Below, one piece after another: positions 3,263-20,514 of a DNA stretch of 64,000 nucleotides (within the stretch, counting starts at the first letter, position 1; every line of letters starts with the position of its first letter). The notes below the pieces were generated by a model. The model saw only the letters and a program-made list of their open reading frames with translations. It was not told where the DNA came from and searched no databases. Location: sequence record MW879344.1, one strand, 5' to 3'. The position numbers and the translations under genes are program-made.

Positions 3263-3384
3263 GGCGAGTTAGCTCAGTTGGTAGAGCAGGAAAAAAACCG
3301 ATTCTTGTATTGAATCGTACAGCAAACAATACTATTGCACTTTTAATGCCCTTGTCGGGGGTTCAATTCCCTCACTCGCCACCA
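3263..3384 (+). tRNA. tRNA-Lys(TTT) interrupted by a 46-nt insert (3291-3336) in the anticodon stem
   Basis: Acceptor GGCGAGT/ACTCGCC+ACCA; removing 3291-3336 gives GG|GCA-CT-TTT-AA-TGCCC. Confidence 0.85.
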
Positions 3385-3444: not shown

Positions 3445-4056
3445 ATGAATATATGTTTACAATGTAATCAAGAAATTGATGATAAGAAAAAGTTTTGTAA
3501 TAAATCTTGTGCGGCAAAGTACAATAATTCTCATAGAATATTGTCGGAAGAAACAAAATCTAAAATTTCTAAATCTTTAAAAGATCGAGAAGCTAAATTT
3601 ATTGAAACTGAAAATGTTAAGGCTGGTAGACTTCGAGCAGGTGCAAAACGTAGTGAATATGCGATTGGAAAATTATTATCTGATGATTTTGAATCATTAA
3701 GTGTTATAAGAAAGAAAAAACGTGTAAAAATGGAACAAGATAATAAATGTTTAATATGTGATTTATCTGAATGGCGTGGTTCTTTATTAACATTGGAAGT
3801 AGATCATATAGATGGAAATAACATGAATAATAGTAGAGATAATTTAAGAGCTTTATGTCCTAATTGTCATTCACAAACTGAAACGTGGCGTGGGAAAAAT
3901 AGTAAAAAAGTTATTTCAGATGAACTTTTAATTGAGATTATTTCAGTTTCTTCATCTATTGCAGAAGTTATTCGAAATACCAATATGTCTAAATCAAAAA
4001 CTTCGTATAATAAAATCCGTGCTATTATGGAAATGAATAAACTATCATTTAACTAA
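3445..4056 (+). CDS. HNH homing endonuclease with N-terminal Zn-binding motif
   Basis: LEVDHIDGNNMNN...NLRALCPNCHSQT; CxxC...FCNKSC. Confidence 0.9.
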   Translation: MNICLQCNQEIDDKKKFCNKSCAAKYNNSHRILSEETKSKISKSLKDREAKFIETENVKAGRLRAGAKRSEYAIGKLLSDDFESLSVIRKKKRVKMEQDNKCLICDLSEWRGSLLTLEVDHIDGNNMNNSRDNLRALCPNCHSQTETWRGKNSKKVISDELLIEIISVSSSIAEVIRNTNMSKSKTSYNKIRAIMEMNKLSFN

Positions 4057-6092: not shown

Positions 6093-6554
6093 ATGGGTGC
6101 AATTATTCTGTACAGTATTTTAGGTTTTCTCGGTGTATTCACTTTGTATATGTTCGTTGTAACATCTGCAATGGGTACTGAACGTTTAAAAACTTCACAG
6201 TACTTTATGTCTTCATTAAGTTATAGTGAAGAAGCTACAGTAAAAATCAATCTTTTGATTGATAAGTATCAAGCTGGCTTACTTAAAGCTAAGCTTAAAT
6301 CAAATGTTATAGAATTCACCGAAATGGAAGGTAATGCACTGGCTGGTGAGATTTATATTGCAAATAAGTACTTCTCGTATGGTCAGTTGTATCGTTATGG
6401 TGCAAATGGAAATACTAAGTGGCAATGCAATAAACCAGATTTAAAAACTTTCAAGCGTATTATTAAACTTGAAAAACAACTTGATATTACTGATGAAGTT
6501 CCAGTACAAAAAAGTACTAGTAAGTCATCAGAAGAACAGGTTATTCTGGACTAA
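6093..6554 (+). CDS. membrane-anchored hypothetical protein
   Basis: N-terminal TM segment. Confidence 0.8.
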   Translation: MGAIILYSILGFLGVFTLYMFVVTSAMGTERLKTSQYFMSSLSYSEEATVKINLLIDKYQAGLLKAKLKSNVIEFTEMEGNALAGEIYIANKYFSYGQLYRYGANGNTKWQCNKPDLKTFKRIIKLEKQLDITDEVPVQKSTSKSSEEQVILD

Positions 6555-6590: not shown

Positions 6591-7274
6591 ATGAATATCA
6601 TTGAACGAGCAAAACATATTGTTTCCGTTTCTGAATTTGAAAGTAATGTTAATCCAATAGAAATGAAAAAGATTAAAGCAGTTTGTCCATACGATGAACA
6701 ATATATTTTACGTATGGTGGTAAGTACCGATGGTTTGACCTATCACTTACCTATTGAATTACGATGGATGTATCCATTGTATATTGCAGCTTTAAAACAT
6801 CAAACTGAAGTAATTGGGATAAAACATCCGTTTTGTTATATTACTGTTCGTCATGGTTTAGTTAAATCAATAACTGATGACGAATGGCACGTTGATGGAT
6901 TCAGTACTAAAATTGTTCATGTACCTGAACAGAACTACATTTGGTCTAACAGTATTCCTACCGAATACACCAATGTTTCTGTTAAGTTCCCTGATGATTT
7001 TGATTCTAATATTCATAATGTGAATCATTACTTACAAAAGTTTGTCCATAATGATGAAGTTCAGCAGTGTAAAGAAAATGTGTTGTATTGTTTAGACCCA
7101 TATATCTTACATCGTCGTCCATCATCAAGTACTGGTGAAGTACGTACTTTTGTTCGTATCTCATTTGTTCCAATTGAAATCAATGATGTTAATAACACCC
7201 AAAATAAGTTATTACCACGTACTTATAACAACGATGGGGTTCAAGTACGAAATAAATTGAGAACGTATGGCTAA
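6591..7274 (+). CDS. 2OG-Fe(II) oxygenase-like protein
   Basis: WHVDG (HxD), LHRRP (H), RTFVRISF (R) facial-triad pattern. Confidence 0.65.
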   Translation: MNIIERAKHIVSVSEFESNVNPIEMKKIKAVCPYDEQYILRMVVSTDGLTYHLPIELRWMYPLYIAALKHQTEVIGIKHPFCYITVRHGLVKSITDDEWHVDGFSTKIVHVPEQNYIWSNSIPTEYTNVSVKFPDDFDSNIHNVNHYLQKFVHNDEVQQCKENVLYCLDPYILHRRPSSSTGEVRTFVRISFVPIEINDVNNTQNKLLPRTYNNDGVQVRNKLRTYG

Positions 7275-7680: not shown

Positions 7681-7706
7681 AACGAAAGAAAAAATTGTGG
7701 TATAAT
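7678..7706 (+). promoter_or_regulatory. TGAAAC-N17-TATAAT promoter class
   Basis: Same pattern at 7862-7890, 13345-13373, 17383-17411, 26431-26459, 41636-41664. Confidence 0.7.
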
Positions 7707-7723
7707 ATAGTACATAAGGCAAC

Positions 7724-7840
7724 GGAATCTTACAGCAAAAATACTAATTTTTGATGAAAACGAAACGACGAGGTTCGAATCCTCACCCACGAATTGCCTT
7801 ATTATTAGTGGGAGCACGGTGCTGGATAAACAAAGATTCC
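7724..7840 (+). ncRNA. module-clamped, permuted tRNA-like RNA (degenerate)
   Basis: GGAATC-TTACAGCAA...GAGG-TTCGAAT-CCTC-ACCCAC...GTGGG...AAACAAA-GATTCC. Confidence 0.65.
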
Positions 7841-7861
7841 AGAATTTAAGTTAGAAAATTA

Positions 7862-7890
7862 TGAAACAAATCAAAAATTTGTGGTATAAT
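7862..7890 (+). promoter_or_regulatory. TGAAAC-N17-TATAAT promoter class
   Basis: TGAAAC 7862-7867, TGG-TATAAT ending 7890. Confidence 0.7.
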
Positions 7891-7902
7891 ATAAGAAGTA
7901 AA

Positions 7903-8010
7903 GCGGGATGGTGATTGATGAAAGCTATTATTTGATTCTAGAAAATCATAATAAGCGAGTAAGAGAACAGGGTTCTTAATATCACGAGGGTTCGATCCCC
8001 TGTCGCTGCA
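7903..8010 (+). ncRNA. tRNA-like RNA with elongated central arm
   Basis: T-arm AGGG-TTCGATC-CCCT, imperfect acceptor GCGGGAT/GTCGCTGC, long central hairpin. Confidence 0.45.
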
Positions 8011-8023
8011 CAAAGCAACAAAC

Positions 8024-8141
8024 GAAATCTCACAGCAAACAAAACAATTTTTTTCCTTGCATAGAAAAACGGTGGGGTTCGATTCCCCAACATCCAAGTT
8101 GCTTTTAGGATGTGTCTGGAAGGCCGTATGACAAAGATTTC
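8024..8141 (+). ncRNA. module-clamped, permuted tRNA-like RNA (degenerate)
   Basis: GAAATCT-CACAGCAA...TGGGG-TTCGATT-CCCCA-ACATCC...GGATGT...ACAA-AGATTTC. Confidence 0.65.
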
Positions 8142-8317
8142 AGTTCCTATCAACTAAAAAGGATAGCATATAATGAGTTCTGAAGAAAATTTAGAATTAT
8201 TAAATAAAATAATGAATGCCATTGCAAATGGTAAGTTGAATGAAACAATGACTGAACTTGGTTACGAAGTAACTAAGAGTACTGATAAAAGTACAGAATG
8301 GTCATTAAAACAATAAT

Positions 8318-8391
8318 GTTCTGTTAGACAAATTGGTAAAGTCACCACCCTTTCAAGGTGGGGTTTACGGGTTCGACCCCCGTACAGAACG
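8318..8391 (+). tRNA. tRNA-Glu(TTC), uninterrupted
   Basis: GTTCTGT/ACAGAAC, CCACC-CT-TTC-AA-GGTGG; no encoded CCA. Confidence 0.92.
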
Positions 8392-8396
8392 CTAAA

Positions 8397-8506
8397 GGAT
8401 TCGCACAGCAACAATAAAATCTTAAAATTCAATTGGTGAAAACAACCTTGCAGTTCGATTCTGCTTCCACAATGCGTGGATCTGGTCGATAGAAAAAACC
8501 GAATCC
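8397..8506 (+). ncRNA. module-clamped, permuted tRNA-like RNA (degenerate)
   Basis: GGATTCG-CACAGCAA...GCAG-TTCGATT-CTGC-TTCCAC...GTGGA...AAAAAAC-CGAATCC. Confidence 0.6.
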
Positions 8507-8545
8507 TGATTTTAATTAAGAAGTACTAAAGAATTTGATACACAC

Positions 8546-8698
8546 GGATTTATACAGCAAACATAATCCTAAAATAAAACATACGATAATGTTACTAACT
8601 CGGAATTCGTTCCCTTCGTTAGTACTTGGCAACTTGGGTACTTAAATAAGTTGTATCACCTCACGTGTATCGGATTAGAGGTGATTATAAATAAATCC
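8546..8698 (+). ncRNA. module-clamped multi-hairpin RNA
   Basis: GGATTTA-TACAGCAA...three hairpins...TAAATCC. Confidence 0.6.
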
Positions 8699-8734
8699 AG
8701 TAACACAAAAGTACCTTGAACGGTACTTTTTTAT

Positions 8735-8827
8735 GGTAGGTTGGCAGAGTTTGGCTTATTGCACTTGTCTTGAAAACAAGCGGGGGTTAACAGCCCTCCG
8801 AGGGTTCAAATCCCTCACCTACCTCCA
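8735..8827 (+). tRNA. tRNA-Ser(TGA)
   Basis: GGTAGGT/ACCTACC, CTTGT-CT-TGA-AA-ACAAG, long variable arm, CCA. Confidence 0.93.
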
Positions 8828-8838
8828 ATACAATAAAG

Positions 8839-9156
8839 GTGAACATGATGGATTCAGTTGGTTTAATCGTTGTGTTTTTAGAACAACGTGTTCGTGGTTC
8901 TAATGAAATGCATTATGTAGTACAAGTTACTGAAGAAGGAACTTGTGACGTTCATGTTACTGACTCATGGAGTTTTAAGTCATGGGAAGATTTAAAAGAA
9001 ACGCATCCTACTTTCAAAAGTTTGTTATATGAATTTTTTAATTCTTGCAATTGGGCACCTTATGTAAACGAAAAAGAAATTTGGGCTGATGAAGTAATCG
9101 GCGGCGAAGGTCTTTATGATGATGATGATTCACATGTATTAAGTACTGATTTGTAA
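8839..9156 (+). CDS. hypothetical acidic protein
   Basis: ORF with AAGG SD; start codon among GTG/ATG uncertain. Confidence 0.75.
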   Translation: MNMMDSVGLIVVFLEQRVRGSNEMHYVVQVTEEGTCDVHVTDSWSFKSWEDLKETHPTFKSLLYEFFNSCNWAPYVNEKEIWADEVIGGEGLYDDDDSHVLSTDL

Positions 9157-9164
9157 AGTTCAAT

Positions 9165-9239
9165 GGGGTACGTAGCTCAGTCTGGTAGAGCAGCCATGCG
9201 AAAACGGTGTGTCGGTGGTTCGAATCCACTCGCTCCCCA
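9165..9239 (+). pseudogene. degenerate tRNA (Phe-like T-arm, anticodon unresolved)
   Basis: Intact D-arm and GGTGG-TTCGAAT-CCACT; mismatched acceptor and anticodon stems. Confidence 0.6.
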
Positions 9240-9243
9240 CTAA

Positions 9244-9300
9244 GGAATCTAGCAGCAACCATAACCCAATCAAACTTTTAATTTGACAATTATGGATTCC
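9244..9300 (+). ncRNA. module RNA carrying an isolated Lys(TTT)-type anticodon stem-loop
   Basis: GGAATC-TAGCAGCAA...TCAAA-CTTTTAA-TTTGA...GATTCC. Confidence 0.7.
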
Positions 9301-9478
9301 CGTTATTTTTAAGGATGTGATATGTCTAAAGAACAAGATGAATTTGAAAAAGAATATCTTATAAGTAAGCGTATTGATCCAAAAGCAACATTTTATATAA
9401 AATCTCGTAGAAAGAAAAATGGTTATAGAACTCGTGAATTGAATAATAAATTTCAAGAATTTCTTAAACGATTTAAAG

Positions 9479-9570
9479 GGTAAAGTGGCAGAGCGGCTGA
9501 ATGCAACCGCTTGGAAAGCGGTCAGGTTAGGTAATCCCTAGCCTCGTAGGTTCAAATCCTATCTTTACCG
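9479..9570 (+). tRNA. tRNA-Ser(GGA)
   Basis: GGTAAAG/CTTTACC, ACCGC-TT-GGA-AA-GCGGT, long variable arm, G73. Confidence 0.92.
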
Positions 9571-9622
9571 CAAAGTAATAACTCCTTATTAAAGTGAAGT
9601 ACAAAAACAATAGGAGAATATT

Positions 9623-9979
9623 ATGTACGAGAAAGATGATGGTCCATTAACTGATGAACAAATTCGTATCATCCGTGAAATGAATAGCCATCTGAATCAA
9701 ACTGATTTAGAAATTGATTTAAATTGGTTGAACAGTGATATACAAGGAAATGCAATGTATTACGACTATTATTACAAAGTTGACGGTGATCTTCGTCGTT
9801 ATACCAGTAATCAAGAGTTAACGGATGCGGAAATCAATAATATTTTTGGTGCAAGCAAACAAGTAGTAATGCTTACTCCAATTGTATTTGAACGTGACGT
9901 AACTACTGAAGACAAATCTGGTAAAAAGATTAAAAGTACTGAAAAAGTACATGTTGGCTTCTTAGGATATGTGGAATAA
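9623..9979 (+). CDS. hypothetical protein
   Basis: ORF with AGGAG SD. Confidence 0.75.
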   Translation: MYEKDDGPLTDEQIRIIREMNSHLNQTDLEIDLNWLNSDIQGNAMYYDYYYKVDGDLRRYTSNQELTDAEINNIFGASKQVVMLTPIVFERDVTTEDKSGKKIKSTEKVHVGFLGYVE

Positions 9980-9981
9980 AA

Positions 9982-10668
9982 ATGTCAAAAAAGACTGATA
10001 AAGAAGTAAAAGATACAAAAGAAAAGTACACTGTTGTTAAACACGGTTCACTAACACTAGTGAATACACCAACAGTAAAAACTTTCTATATGAATGGTTC
10101 TATTGATCATCCTACATTAACTAAGTTCCAAAAGTTCTTAGAAGATACATGTACGGAAAATAATAAAATTGATACCGAAGAAACTGAACGCAAAGAAAAG
10201 GATGAATTTAAAAAGATTCATGATCCTGAATCTAAGCCAGAGTTTGTTCCTGCTAAACGTAAAGTTGAGCGTATCAATCTGGTTATCAATAGTGGTGGTG
10301 GTTTAGTTGCAGTAATGCTAGAAGTTGTAGCACTAATGAAAACTTCACCAATTCCAATTGATACCTACTGTTTTGGTTCTGCAATGAGTGCAGCTTTCTT
10401 TATCTTCTTACATGGCAAACGCCGTTTTGTTGGTGAAGGTGCCTCATTTATGACACATAGCATTGGTGCTATGGCATGGGATAATGTACCAAACATGACA
10501 ATTCGTATGGAGTACTTGGTTAAACAAAACGAGTACGCACAACAGGAAATTGCTAAACGTACTGGAATTCCTCTTGAAAAATTAAAAGAGAAAGAACATC
10601 TCGATTGGTACTTGACTGCTGAAGAAGCGTTAGATGTTAAAATCGGTGAATATTTGATCCGAGATTAA
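9982..10668 (+). CDS. clpP: ClpP-family protease subunit
   Basis: INSGGG, GSAMSAA (catalytic Ser), FMTHS (catalytic His). Confidence 0.88.
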   Translation: MSKKTDKEVKDTKEKYTVVKHGSLTLVNTPTVKTFYMNGSIDHPTLTKFQKFLEDTCTENNKIDTEETERKEKDEFKKIHDPESKPEFVPAKRKVERINLVINSGGGLVAVMLEVVALMKTSPIPIDTYCFGSAMSAAFFIFLHGKRRFVGEGASFMTHSIGAMAWDNVPNMTIRMEYLVKQNEYAQQEIAKRTGIPLEKLKEKEHLDWYLTAEEALDVKIGEYLIRD

Positions 10669-11329: not shown

Positions 11330-11341
11330 AAAAAAAGTTTT

Positions 11342-11393
11342 AGAATCTAACAGCAATCAAAACTCATTGGATATATGAAAAAAGATAGATTCT
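11342..11393 (+). ncRNA. minimal module RNA
   Basis: AGAATCT-AACAGCAA...TCAT-loop-ATGA-AAAAAGAT-AGATTCT. Confidence 0.65.
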
Positions 11394-11400
11394 AGTATTT

Positions 11401-11473: not shown

Positions 11474-11573
11474 CGAAGTAGTTCAGTACTGAAAAATGTA
11501 CAGTGAAATTATTCAACACTATAGGTAGCACTTTGAATGAATCAGTAAGCCTATAAGTAACTACAATAAATTT

Positions 11574-11700
11574 GGAATTCAACAGCAATTCACTTACTAA
11601 AAACAGCTACCTCACGGTTTGTAGGTTCAAGTCCTACCTTGTACTTTCGAGTACATGTGGTGAAAATGGTAAACACGGCTGTCCAAAAGAAATGAATTCC
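11574..11700 (+). tRNA. circularly permuted tRNA gene, Leu(TAA)-like
   Basis: 3' half 11596-11644, T-TTCG-A linker, 5' half 11651-11682; GCTGT/ACAGC anticodon stem; flanked by GGAATTC/GAATTCC. Confidence 0.75.
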
Positions 11701-11753
11701 AGTATTAATTAAGACATAAATATTCTTATACACTTTTTTGTAAGGATATAATT

Positions 11754-12353
11754 ATGGAAATGAAAAAGTTGATGGAAGATATTTCTGCCATCATGGAAGG
11801 ACAATTACCTGGTTATTATTATCATGGAAGTTCTGCCCCAATATCAAATTTTAGTGATGAGTTTGTTGGTAGAGGAAATGATGAATACGGTCCGGGAATA
11901 TATTTTAGTTCAGTTCCAAATACTTCTATAGGTTATGCAAAAGATGGCGGTTCTAATGGAATGGTATATCAGTGCGAAATCAATTTAAGAAAAGAACTAT
12001 CTAAAAAAACTAGAGTTAATAAAGCAGTACTATTAAAATTAATGCAAAATACACCTGATGAAGATGCATATACTAACTGGAATGAAAATAAAAATGTTGC
12101 TTATAGAACAGCATTACAGGGTTATGTAGATGAAGGTAATATGTATGATGCGTTAATGGGTGTTTGGTACGATTGGTATAGAGAATATCCTGTTCAATTC
12201 GTGCGTTCACTAGTACAGTTAGGATATGATGGATACATATATACTTTTGCAAGCGGTGAACGTTTTATTATAGTATATAATCCAGCAAGTATAAAAGTTG
12301 TAAACACATTCAATCCAGAAGAAGCTATGCAGAAACTGATTGGAAGTGAATAA
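11754..12353 (+). CDS. ADP-ribosyltransferase-fold protein (ART-PolyVal-like), possibly virion-packaged
   Basis: YYHGS, GPGIYFS, YA, late E motifs; ATAAATA at 11716-11722. Confidence 0.6.
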   Translation: MEMKKLMEDISAIMEGQLPGYYYHGSSAPISNFSDEFVGRGNDEYGPGIYFSSVPNTSIGYAKDGGSNGMVYQCEINLRKELSKKTRVNKAVLLKLMQNTPDEDAYTNWNENKNVAYRTALQGYVDEGNMYDALMGVWYDWYREYPVQFVRSLVQLGYDGYIYTFASGERFIIVYNPASIKVVNTFNPEEAMQKLIGSE

Positions 12354-12361
12354 TAAGATTT

Positions 12362-12479
12362 GGAATTCAACAGCAAATCATTCTAAACCCGTAGCATGTC
12401 GTAGGTTCAAGTCCTACCAGTACTTTCGAGTACTGTAGCTCAGTTGGTAGAGCAGCCACCTTAAAAAGAAATGAATTCC
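12362..12479 (+). tRNA. circularly permuted tRNA-like gene, anticodon unresolved
   Basis: T-arm and CAGTACT, TTCG, AGTACTG and D-arm GCTC/GAGC; flanked by GGAATTC/GAATTCC. Confidence 0.7.
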
Positions 12480-12511
12480 AGTATTAATTAAAACAACATG
12501 AGTATAAATCA

Positions 12512-12961: not shown

Positions 12962-12971
12962 AACAAGTTTT

Positions 12972-13034
12972 GGAATCTAGCAGCACCCATAAAATGAAAT
13001 CAACTGTTAATTGAAAAATTCAAAAATGGATTCC
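12972..13034 (+). ncRNA. module RNA carrying an isolated Asn(GTT)-type anticodon stem-loop
   Basis: GGAATC-TAGCAGCA...TCAA-CTGTTAA-TTGA...GATTCC. Confidence 0.7.
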
Positions 13035-13054
13035 AGCCTATTTCGGAGTAAAAA

Positions 13055-13581: not shown

Positions 13582-13636
13582 AAGAATCTAACAGCAATCA
13601 AAACTCATTCGATTATATGAAAAAAGATAGATTCTT
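13582..13636 (+). ncRNA. minimal module RNA
   Basis: Near-copy of 11342-11393. Confidence 0.65.
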
Positions 13637-13865: not shown

Positions 13866-13947
13866 GCGGGATTAGCTCAGTGGTAGAGCACTTGCCTTCC
13901 AAGCAAGAGGCGAATAGGTTCCATCGGTTCGAATCCGATATTCCGCT
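13866..13947 (+). tRNA. tRNA-Gly(TCC) with enlarged variable region
   Basis: GCGGGAT/ATTCCGC, U73, CTTGC-CT-TCC-AA-GCAAG, ~15-nt variable region. Confidence 0.85.
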
Positions 13948-14065
13948 CAAACTAAACAAACAATAAGGTGATTTTTATGCTATAGAATCCTAGTACTGGT
14001 CCTCCTAAAGAATTTAATTCTGATATAAACAACTCAAAATTAAACTACTATAGGAAGAACATACC

Positions 14066-14400: not shown

Positions 14401-14457
14401 AAGAATCCAGCAGCAACTAAAACTCATTCGCTTAATATGAAAAAGAAACGGATTCTT
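14401..14457 (+). ncRNA. minimal module RNA
   Basis: AAGAATCC-AGCAGCAA...TCAT-loop-ATGA...GGATTCTT. Confidence 0.65.
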
Positions 14458-20427: not shown

Positions 20428-20514
20428 GGGTCGTTCACTCAGTTGGTTAGAGTACCGGACTTTTAATCCGGCGGGTATATCCCATCGAAGGTTCGAATCC
20501 TTCACGGCCTACCA
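20428..20514 (+). tRNA. tRNA-Lys(TTT) with long variable arm
   Basis: CCGGA-CT-TTT-AA-TCCGG, GGG-TATAT-CCC variable hairpin, ACCA. Confidence 0.88.

Follow-up and report, generated by a model that had tools for sequence, protein, structure and literature searches.

Positions 9244-9300 of the window (the whole stretch of DNA that was analysed, 64,000 nucleotides) raise the question of what an anticodon stem-loop of tRNA-Lys(UUU), standing apart from any tRNA, is doing in the tRNA array of a large phage. Positions 8700-9700 are 100% identical to positions 302749-303749 of the Erwinia jumbo phage pEa_SNUABM_49 (Eneladusvirus BF, 358 kb), and Serratia phage BF shares more than 99% identity with the same interval. 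A tRNA array on the + strand, with 21 ARAGORN calls and 22 Rfam tRNA matches, fills the first 27 kb of the window. The segment 9244-9300 is not a tRNA by the usual criteria (RF00005): it is called neither by ARAGORN nor by Rfam, and it has no D arm and no T arm. No Rfam family covers it, either at gathering scores or at E values up to 10, YrlA (RF02553) included.

Anatomy of the element and its paralogues

The element is enclosed by a terminal helix, P1, which is formed by GGAATC (9244-9249) and GATTCC (9295-9300) and can be extended to 9244-9251/9293-9300. The 5′ strand of P1 is followed by the sequence CAGCAA (9253-9258) and by a second helix, P2 (CATAA, 9260-9264; TTATG, 9290-9294). Inside P2 lies the 5-bp helix P3 (TCAAA, 9270-9274; TTTGA, 9282-9286), whose 7-nt loop CTTTTAA (9275-9281) is the anticodon loop of tRNA-Lys(UUU). 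The element thus has the 5-bp stem and the 7-nt loop C-U-UUU-A-A by which we define a mimic of the tRNA-Lys anticodon stem-loop. The stems and the loop described in the initial annotation are all present at 9244-9300, and its claim that the loop is identical to that of the Lys(TTT) genes was confirmed for both: the regular tRNA-Lys(UUU) at 20428-20514 (+ strand, 87 nt, regular anticodon arm, variable-region hairpin) and an insert-bearing tRNA-Lys(UUU) at 3263-3381 (+ strand, 119 nt, 46.5 bits).

The heptamer CTTTTAA occurs in the window at chance frequency (24 found, 23 expected), and a perfect 5-bp stem lies under only two of these 24 copies, that of the 9244-9300 element and that of the true tRNA-Lys. 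Anticodon-like 7-nt loops on non-tRNA hairpins number about 10 per strand of the window. The 57-mer alone gave no thermodynamic signal when compared with shuffled sequences (-6.7 kcal/mol, z -0.78). The heptamer count and the fold of the single sequence are uninformative, and the real support is comparative.

Comparison revealed that 9244-9300 belongs to an extensive family of phage small RNAs that had not been described before. The family layout consists of the terminal helix P1, the invariant motif (A)CAGCAA right after it, and a variable inner module. Paralogues were sought as terminal helices whose 5′ strand ends 0-5 nt ahead of CAGCA. The window contains about 12 members, all on the + strand, and the motif CAGCAA-M-CA-WW-A is enriched in it (12 matches against 3.9 expected; 0 of 100 shuffles). 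The P1 sequence varies among the paralogues, and its pairing is kept. A covariance model built from ten uncultured-phage sequences only placed 9243-9301 first in the window, listing the mini Y-RNA-like element of lysine type (9244-9300, + strand) at 37.8 bits; 12971-13035 followed with 31.5 bits, and then came other short members and the tRNA-Lys insert.

The second-ranking paralogue (12971-13035, + strand; TCAA-CTGTTAA-TTGA) carries an Asn(GUU)-type loop, which is the loop of the same phage's tRNA-Asn, and is located upstream of an ORF and of tRNA-Asn. It is kept upstream of tRNA-Asn in XbC2 and CBB; the Yersinia phage and an IMG/VR contig of 371 kb have it as well. Three further mini paralogues on the + strand were detected by the handle search and the covariance model: 11341-11394 (loop TGGATAT; tRNA-Ile begins 6 nt downstream), 13582-13636 (tRNA-Gln begins 5 nt downstream) and 14401-14457. 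Other members, also on the + strand, are longer. In 11573-11701 P1 and the ACAGCAA handle are combined with a T-arm and a closed acceptor-like hairpin, and 12361-12480 contains a YrlA-type tRNA-like domain (T arm, closed acceptor hairpin, D arm). T-arm-like hairpins are present in 7724-7840, 8024-8141 and 8396-8507, the last lying directly 3′ of tRNA-Glu, and 8546-8698 is a long paralogue of 153 nt. The region 7700-8700 is altogether abundant in tRNA-like fragments.

Some of the neighbouring tRNA genes are themselves unusual. In 3263-3381 an insert of 46 nt separates positions 28 and 29 of the anticodon stem and consists of the handle in permuted form: a 3′ A-rich strand, a loop-closed P1, CAGCAA and a linker lead to the Lys anticodon loop (3340-3346). 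Kaldavass and XbC2 have 122-nt tRNA-Lys genes with the same permuted insert, and an insert-bearing tRNA-Lys, of which only the 3′ end was seen, appears to exist in GAP32 as well. A tRNA-like body (9166-9238, + strand, 36.4 bits), in which the anticodon loop is replaced by ATGCGAAAAC, ends 5 nt upstream of the lysine element; it is labelled tRNA-Ser(cga) in GenBank, and ARAGORN makes no call there. An archaeal-type bulge-helix-bulge intron was considered for 3263-3381 and 9166-9300 and rejected, since the splice product would be inconsistent (8-bp anticodon stem) and no endonuclease candidate was found. The interpretation as split or permuted tRNAs failed in the same way, on the 8-bp anticodon stem and the endonuclease candidate.

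The family element lies inside a same-strand tRNA array at 23 of the 25 loci checked. The spacers between element and neighbouring tRNA measure 0-8 nt, with 0 nt ahead of tRNA-Lys at locus L304, which suggests release by ordinary tRNA end processing. This tight packing between tRNA genes also suggests that 9244-9300 may be a discrete RNA of 57 nt. CCA is encoded in none of 55 copies. Around the lysine element there is no conspicuous signal resembling a promoter or a terminator. The window copy has a T-run behind it, and an intrinsic terminator was considered and rejected: the scan of 8700-9700 returned 0 terminator-like sites, three of the six P1 pairs are G-C, and paralogues are followed by tRNAs 5-6 nt on. 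HNH endonuclease genes were observed near the elements.

Conservation and covariation in other phages

Phages of Yersinia, Xanthomonas and Cronobacter retain the lysine stem-loop. Yersinia phage fHe-Yen9-04 has an identical lysine element despite diverged flanks, and Xanthomonas phage XaC1 has two copies with differing P1 helices and identical lysine stem-loops. The copies of GAP32, Kaldavass and XbC2 read TCAAA-CTTTTAC-TTTGA. A specific pattern with 22 fixed bases (CAGCAA, a gap of 9-15, and the 17-nt stem-loop) matched 94 viral loci in IMG/VR, on contigs of up to 413 kb. In 596 Gb of bacterial genomes the same pattern matched only seven loci, mostly in MAG contigs, with two isolates of gut Clostridia in addition; each of the seven has a proper P1 helix. 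The lysine loop thus reaches phages of enterobacteria, Xanthomonas and gut Firmicutes. Two looser IMG/VR patterns returned mostly chance hits among the matches listed, with few jumbo-phage loci of use. Matches to RAGATH-34 and freshwater-1 in related loci represent different RNAs.

The IMG/VR lysine copies comprise 57 distinct sequences with 40 different P1 strands; the P1 sequences are fully turned over and CAGCAA is invariant. At least seven Watson-Crick pairs were found in P1 of 55 of 64 copies, compared with 2% after downstream partners had been exchanged among loci. A P2 of 3 bp occurs in 64% of the IMG/VR copies and in 22% of the controls. The near-invariance of the stem-loop in this set is partly a matter of construction, the collecting pattern having fixed it. 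Independently of the pattern, the lysine loop was also found on CAAAA/TTTTG and (C)TAGA/TCTA(A) stems, that is, on three different stems in all.

Covariation was assessed on 144 matches, 85 of them distinct, in an alignment fitted to the covariance model itself. Across the 85 distinct relatives 96.9% of the pairing cells are paired, against at most 48% in slid controls. Double (compensatory) changes occur at all 16 base pairs of the three helices, and the 308 compensatory cells compare with 74 in shuffles, none of the 500 shuffles reaching the observed value. All eight pairs of P1 covary, with 96% of their cells paired. Conservation of the loop in homologues, one of the points on which the initial annotation had staked its reading, held: XaC1 and the majority of the IMG/VR copies have the identical loop. 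These data support selection on the lysine anticodon stem-loop.

Lysine is one of several identities displayed by the family. Beside the lysine copies there are hairpins with the loops CTGTTAA (Asn), CTTGTAA (Thr), CTGTAAA/C (Tyr), CTGATAA (Ile), CTTCTAA (Arg), CTCATAA (Met or Ile2), CTGAAAA/T (Phe), CTGCAAA/G (Cys) and TTTGGGN (Pro). The anticodon-loop pattern YU-NNN-R-N fits 22 of the 43 non-Lys family hairpins, compared with 24% of all such hairpins at the same loci. About half of the family hairpin loops are not anticodon-like (the YGG(A/T)TAT class, for example, is recurrent), which counts against the function proposed below. Anticodon display is frequent in the family, not universal.

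A Ro60-like protein encoded near the elements

Candidate partners were sought by clustering all ORFs located within 5 kb of an element. The dominant neighbour is a protein of 458-598 aa encoded on the same strand as the element. It combines the Pfam domains DUF2828 and DUF7788, contains the DxSGS MIDAS motif typical of vWA domains, and belongs to PHROG 850 (phrog_850, 'RNA-binding protein'). A same-strand DUF2828+vWA gene was found at 31 of the 92 element loci (0.79 Mb; redundant lineages) and at 0 of 237 other viral loci (2.0 Mb). In several lineages this gene starts 80-460 nt 3′ of the element. An AlphaFold model was obtained for an IMG/VR homologue (21-sequence alignment, pLDDT 76.7). Its two best fold matches in the PDB are the full-length Rsr of D. 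radiodurans (2NVO, E 3e-7) and Xenopus Ro60 (1YVR, E 9e-6, TM 0.47/0.42); the TM-scores of the fold matches are moderate (0.38-0.47), and all matches beyond these two are to vWA domains only. A PDB search with the sequence of the Ro-like protein alone returned nothing, and a literature search for DUF2828 yielded nothing relevant.

Matches to the Ro-like protein were found in 382 phage records. The Eneladusvirus homologue (pEa_SNUABM_12, 101508-103034; DUF7788 8e-41, DUF2828 4e-33) follows an RNA ligase at a distance of two genes, with a tRNA nucleotidyltransferase close by. About 200 kb separate the Ro-like gene from the elements in the window's own lineage, which counts against a partnership, and no family member adjoins the Ro-like gene in the window's own genome. 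No TROVE domain (Pfam) was detected in the large ORFs of the window and of the 50 kb upstream. A 595-aa ORF (L128:13456-15243) examined as a Ro-like protein proved unrelated, and an ART-PolyVal gene located between two long members was dropped as a partner because the Yersinia phage lacks it at the corresponding position.

The gene kit of Serratia phage BF includes Rnl1, Pnkp, Thg1, TyrRS and a Sir2/Nudix cluster, and the lineage also has a second RNA ligase and a CCA-type enzyme. Pnkp and Rnl1 form the T4-type tRNA repair pair, which in T4 repairs the damage done by PrrC. The presence of this pair makes a conflict over tRNA cleavage a realistic setting.

The Ro-like protein family is present in Felixounaviruses (tblastn). 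In the Felixounavirus HY02 the tRNA array lies directly 3′ of the Ro-like gene (L349:4497-5912) and contains three short members, at 6251-6317 (covariance model E about 3e-5), 6723-6789 (about 8e-5) and 6418-6471 (0.05), and a long YrlA-like member at 6809-6945. All four have a P1 of the form AGACC.../...GGTCT and the motif ACAGCAA or CAGCAA; they lie between the annotated tRNAs and are not counted among these. The Ro60-like protein gp130 of the related phage Bas63 was reported to counter the Ppl defence system, and the authors guessed that Y RNAs are hidden among the neighbouring 'tRNAs' (PhageMaP preprint, PMC11482910). Bas63 gp130 belongs to the same protein family, and its gene too is located directly upstream of a tRNA array. 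The RNA partner was not identified there (PMC11482910), whereas HY02 offers candidate partners between its annotated tRNAs. Ppl, the only defence that a Ro-like protein of phages is known to counter, has no known action on tRNA, which counts against the function proposed below.

Proposed function and comparison with known RNAs

With somewhat more confidence than doubt, we interpret 9244-9300 as a Y-RNA-like ncRNA that combines a handle for the phage Ro60-like protein with a Lys(UUU) mimic as its working end. The RNA would probably be cut from a polycistronic transcript of the tRNA array by the ordinary tRNA end-processing enzymes. P1 and CAGCAA would then bind the Ro60-like DUF2828+vWA protein in the way the stems of Y RNAs bind Ro60/Rsr. 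The inner module may serve as the variable working end, and its lysine stem-loop could engage a protein that reads the anticodon loop of tRNA-Lys, most plausibly a host anticodon-directed defence nuclease. The mimic might compete with the real tRNA-Lys or tether the Ro-like particle to the nuclease. A candidate for such a target is the PARIS nuclease AriB, which cuts Lys(UUU), Thr(UGU) and Asn(GUU) tRNAs sharing U36AAU39 (PMC12409363). This motif is present in both the Lys (9244-9300) and the Asn (12971-13035) elements of the window. AriB also reads the D-loop (PMC12409363), and for this reason a bare stem-loop would be an incomplete AriB mimic.

A bolder version of this interpretation, which we regard as doubtful, would see in the family a plug-in library of anticodon baits on one handle, with the Ro60-like particle finding and neutralising anticodon-directed nucleases by means of its lysine, Asn, Thr, Tyr, Ile, Arg and other mimics, or, bolder still, a source of replacement anticodon arms for tRNAs that have lost theirs to cleavage. 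In the latter case the insert-bearing tRNAs and the body at 9166-9238 would be traces of arm exchange.

The initial annotation had proposed a minimal anticodon decoy or sponge. In its free-standing form, which seems to us unlikely, the RNA alone would soak up PrrC, RloC or PARIS nucleases or be cut in place of tRNA-Lys, and the outer clamp would only stabilise it. The conserved lysine loop fits such a decoy, as does the phage's own tRNA repair kit, and work from the Kaufmann laboratory is said to have shown that PrrC cleaves isolated tRNA-Lys anticodon stem-loops. Lys and Asn tRNAs are both targets of AriB, U36-A-A-U39 is kept in both window elements, and competition by overexpressed viral tRNAs was raised as a possibility by the authors of the AriB study (PMC12409363). 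The conserved loop is the part of the proposal that stood; the free-standing part did not, because the loop is one module on a P1 and CAGCAA handle that is shared by about 12 paralogues in the window and by hundreds of relatives, many with other loops or a tRNA-like domain, and that is linked to the Ro-like gene. A decoy acting alone leaves unexplained the invariant CAGCAA, the presence of the handle on tRNA-like or non-anticodon members and the linkage, and the D-loop contacts that AriB needs are absent from the element. It is also at odds with C38 in the GAP32-type copies and with the stem of the lysine element, which presumably differs from that of E. coli tRNA-Lys.

That the element is debris of an insert-bearing tRNA-Lys, retained as a processing or stability hairpin (cis punctuation) of the array transcript and with an incidental loop, is improbable in our judgement. 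The stretch from CAGCAA through the linker to the loop is clearly homologous to the insert-bearing tRNA-Lys genes, one of which occupies the syntenic slot in Kaldavass and XbC2; the wealth of tRNA-like fragments in 7700-8700 and the abutting tRNAs point the same way. Yet the loop and the stem persist across many lineages while P1 and the linkers turn over, the loop sits on covarying stems, and a 7-nt loop would not have survived as debris in phages whose hosts are unrelated. We consider it very unlikely that the element is an armless tRNA that is charged, with P1 as acceptor stem, or an anticodon-arm spare part to be ligated into damaged tRNA bodies. A P1 of 7-9 bp followed by 1-3 nt, a canonical 5-bp/7-nt anticodon arm and the slot in tRNA arrays would suit these roles, and so would the anticodon-less tRNA body 5 nt upstream, the tRNAs with the handle inserted beside the anticodon arm, and the RNA ligases and CCA-type enzyme of the phage. 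Defence nucleases that amputate the whole anticodon arm do exist, P2 OLD being one (PMC12445682). The lack of CCA in all 55 copies and of a T arm for EF-Tu argues against charging; grafting of the 17-nt stem-loop into 9166-9238 would produce an 8-bp anticodon stem, and no endonuclease for the exchange was identified. Hardly any credence is left for a DNA-level repeat (miniature inverted-repeat element, recombination site or homing target) or an intrinsic terminator, which the terminal inverted repeats, the many copies, the nearby HNH endonuclease genes and the T-run might suggest. Every copy points in the direction of transcription, the invariant motif lacks symmetry, the helices contain G-U pairs and the inner ones covary too, P1 is AT-rich, and the terminator scan of 8700-9700 was empty.

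On the preferred reading as a Ro60-associated RNA, members of this family are likely players in the fight between phages and bacteria over tRNAs. If that is true, they would add an RNA-based layer to the tRNA-cleavage conflict, beside the supply of phage tRNAs and the repair by Pnkp/Rnl1. The family also provides concrete candidate RNA partners for the Ro60-like proteins, which are widespread in large phages. The phage "tRNA arrays" hold unannotated, tRNA-sized non-tRNA genes together with tRNAs that have a handle insert in the anticodon stem, and annotation pipelines miss such genes or mislabel them, as with 'tRNA-Ser(cga)' and the 119-122-nt 'tRNA-Lys/Leu'.

Among known RNAs, armless nematode mitochondrial tRNAs resemble the element: they are of similar size, and two connectors link their terminal stem to a canonical anticodon arm. 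The phage element differs from them by the missing CCA, by the invariant CAGCAA connector and by its setting in bacterial translation, which needs the T arm. Self-cleaving ribozymes, considered for their association with tRNAs, were set aside: there were no matches to known ones, and their core motifs are absent from the element. Phage tRNAs that evade or replace cleaved tRNAs (T5 tRNA-Lys/Thr/Asn versus PARIS; tRNA-Thr versus P2 OLD) concern the same identities, Lys UUU, Asn GUU and Thr UGU, and the elements are likewise located in tRNA clusters of phages, against a background of tRNA-directed defence. Those tRNAs are complete and translating and carry escape mutations, whereas the element, which is devoid of D arm, T arm and CCA, cannot simply stand in for a tRNA in translation.

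The closest comparison is with YrlA and Ro60. In Ro60/Y RNA complexes the stem binds Ro and another module recruits a partner, and the Ro/Rsr-binding motif near the YrlA 5′ end is GNCGAAN0-1G (PMC4201824). The phage family has (A)CAGCAA at the same place, not this motif, and exists in many copies embedded in tRNA arrays. Its minis (55-70 nt in total) carry a bare anticodon stem-loop where YrlA has the tRNA-like domain, and the phage protein is of the divergent DUF2828+vWA type, unlike Ro60/Rsr without a Pfam TROVE match. The Rfam YrlA model scored 40.5 bits (E 2e-6) on 12361-12480, below the gathering score of 69, and the match covers model positions 24-84, that is, the tRNA-like core only and not the handle. 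The family is best filed as a variant of the Ro60-associated Y-like RNAs, from which it departs in the motif and in the fit to the Rfam YrlA model and with which it agrees in architecture and, at part of its loci, in linkage: its 5′ and 3′ ends form a terminal stem flanked by a conserved motif, a large internal loop leads to a second, tRNA-mimicking module (in 9244-9300 only an anticodon stem-loop), a Ro60-type gene lies within a few kb on the same strand at 31 of 92 element loci though not in the window's own lineage, and the long members (12361-12480; HY02 6809-6945) share with YrlA the order T arm, closed acceptor, D arm.

tRNA genes carrying modules of the family

In the tRNA-Lys(UUU) gene at 3263-3381, which ARAGORN did not call, the 5′ strand of the anticodon stem is interrupted between positions 28 and 29 by an insert of 46 nt, made up of the handle of the Y-RNA-like family. 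The gene is directly followed by an HNH endonuclease ORF (3445-4056; Pfam HNH, 7e-5; NUMOD3). In uncultured phages 'tRNAs' of 112-124 nt with the same kind of insert form clusters, which adjoin the gene of the Ro-like DUF2828+vWA protein (loci L289, 9201-10359; L291, 9017-9784; L311, 9381-10131); the L311 cluster includes a tRNA-Tyr(GUA). The phage studied here has an insert-bearing 'tRNA-Leu(taa)' of 119 nt as well, 16 kb upstream of the window (locus L128, 33282-33400).

Immediately before the lysine element (9244-9300) lies a tRNA-like gene (9166-9238; Rfam, 36.4 bits), labelled tRNA-Ser(cga) in GenBank. Where the anticodon loop would be, it has ATGCGAAAAC, which is the Y-RNA-like family's A-rich 3′ motif. 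Over 9166-9300, which comprises this gene and the lysine element, the sequence of Yersinia phage fHe-Yen9-04 is identical.

The tRNA-Lys(UUU) at 20428-20514 measures 87 nt, its variable region forming a small hairpin; the tRNA-Gly(UCC) at 13866-13948 measures 83 nt. Unrelated phages in IMG/VR repeatedly have Lys(UUU) tRNAs of 83-86 nt too (L250, L252, L255, L308), so a tRNA-Lys with an enlarged variable arm seems to be a trait conserved among phages.

Long family members and a recurrent loop class

Four long family members are packed into the dense segment 7900-8720, which has no annotated genes and contains further T-arm-like fragments (e.g. around 7985-8010). The segment looks like a graveyard or a nursery of tRNA-derived modules. 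An ADP-ribosyltransferase ORF (11754-12353; ART-PolyVal, 1.8e-11) lies between two further long members, which are YrlA-like (span 11573-12480). These two RNAs are only ~270 nt apart in the Yersinia phage, so the ADP-ribosyltransferase gene looks like an insertion between them.

The loop class YGG(A/T)TAT recurs in family members on covarying stems, in the window at 11341-11394 and 13582-13636, and at loci L124, L134, L250 and L304. Its G at position 33 sets it apart from canonical anticodon loops.

Genes and RNAs in the neighbourhood

The ORFs around the tRNA array (window 9982-10668; L128 15983-16912, 20692-22534, 26638-27468 and 33850-34638) include those for a Clp-protease-like protein, an ADP-ribosylglycohydrolase, a NadR-like enzyme, an NMN transporter and two R2K ATP-grasp proteins; NAD/ADP-ribose functions are thus interspersed in the tRNA region. 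At other loci, a RAGATH-34 RNA with the CUGAUGA...GAAAC core (77.9 bits) is located just upstream of the Ro-like gene (L306, 4467-4574), and a 'freshwater-1' RNA (74.3 bits) lies within the tRNA array of another element-bearing phage (L256, 9512-9573).

Distribution of the lysine element

Genome assemblies of two cultured gut Clostridia, Hominicoprocola fusiformis and Dysosmobacter segnis, contain identical lysine elements (genome contigs L345, L347), which are presumably located in prophages or co-assembled phages. The Y-RNA-like family therefore reaches well beyond the jumbo phages of enterobacteria.
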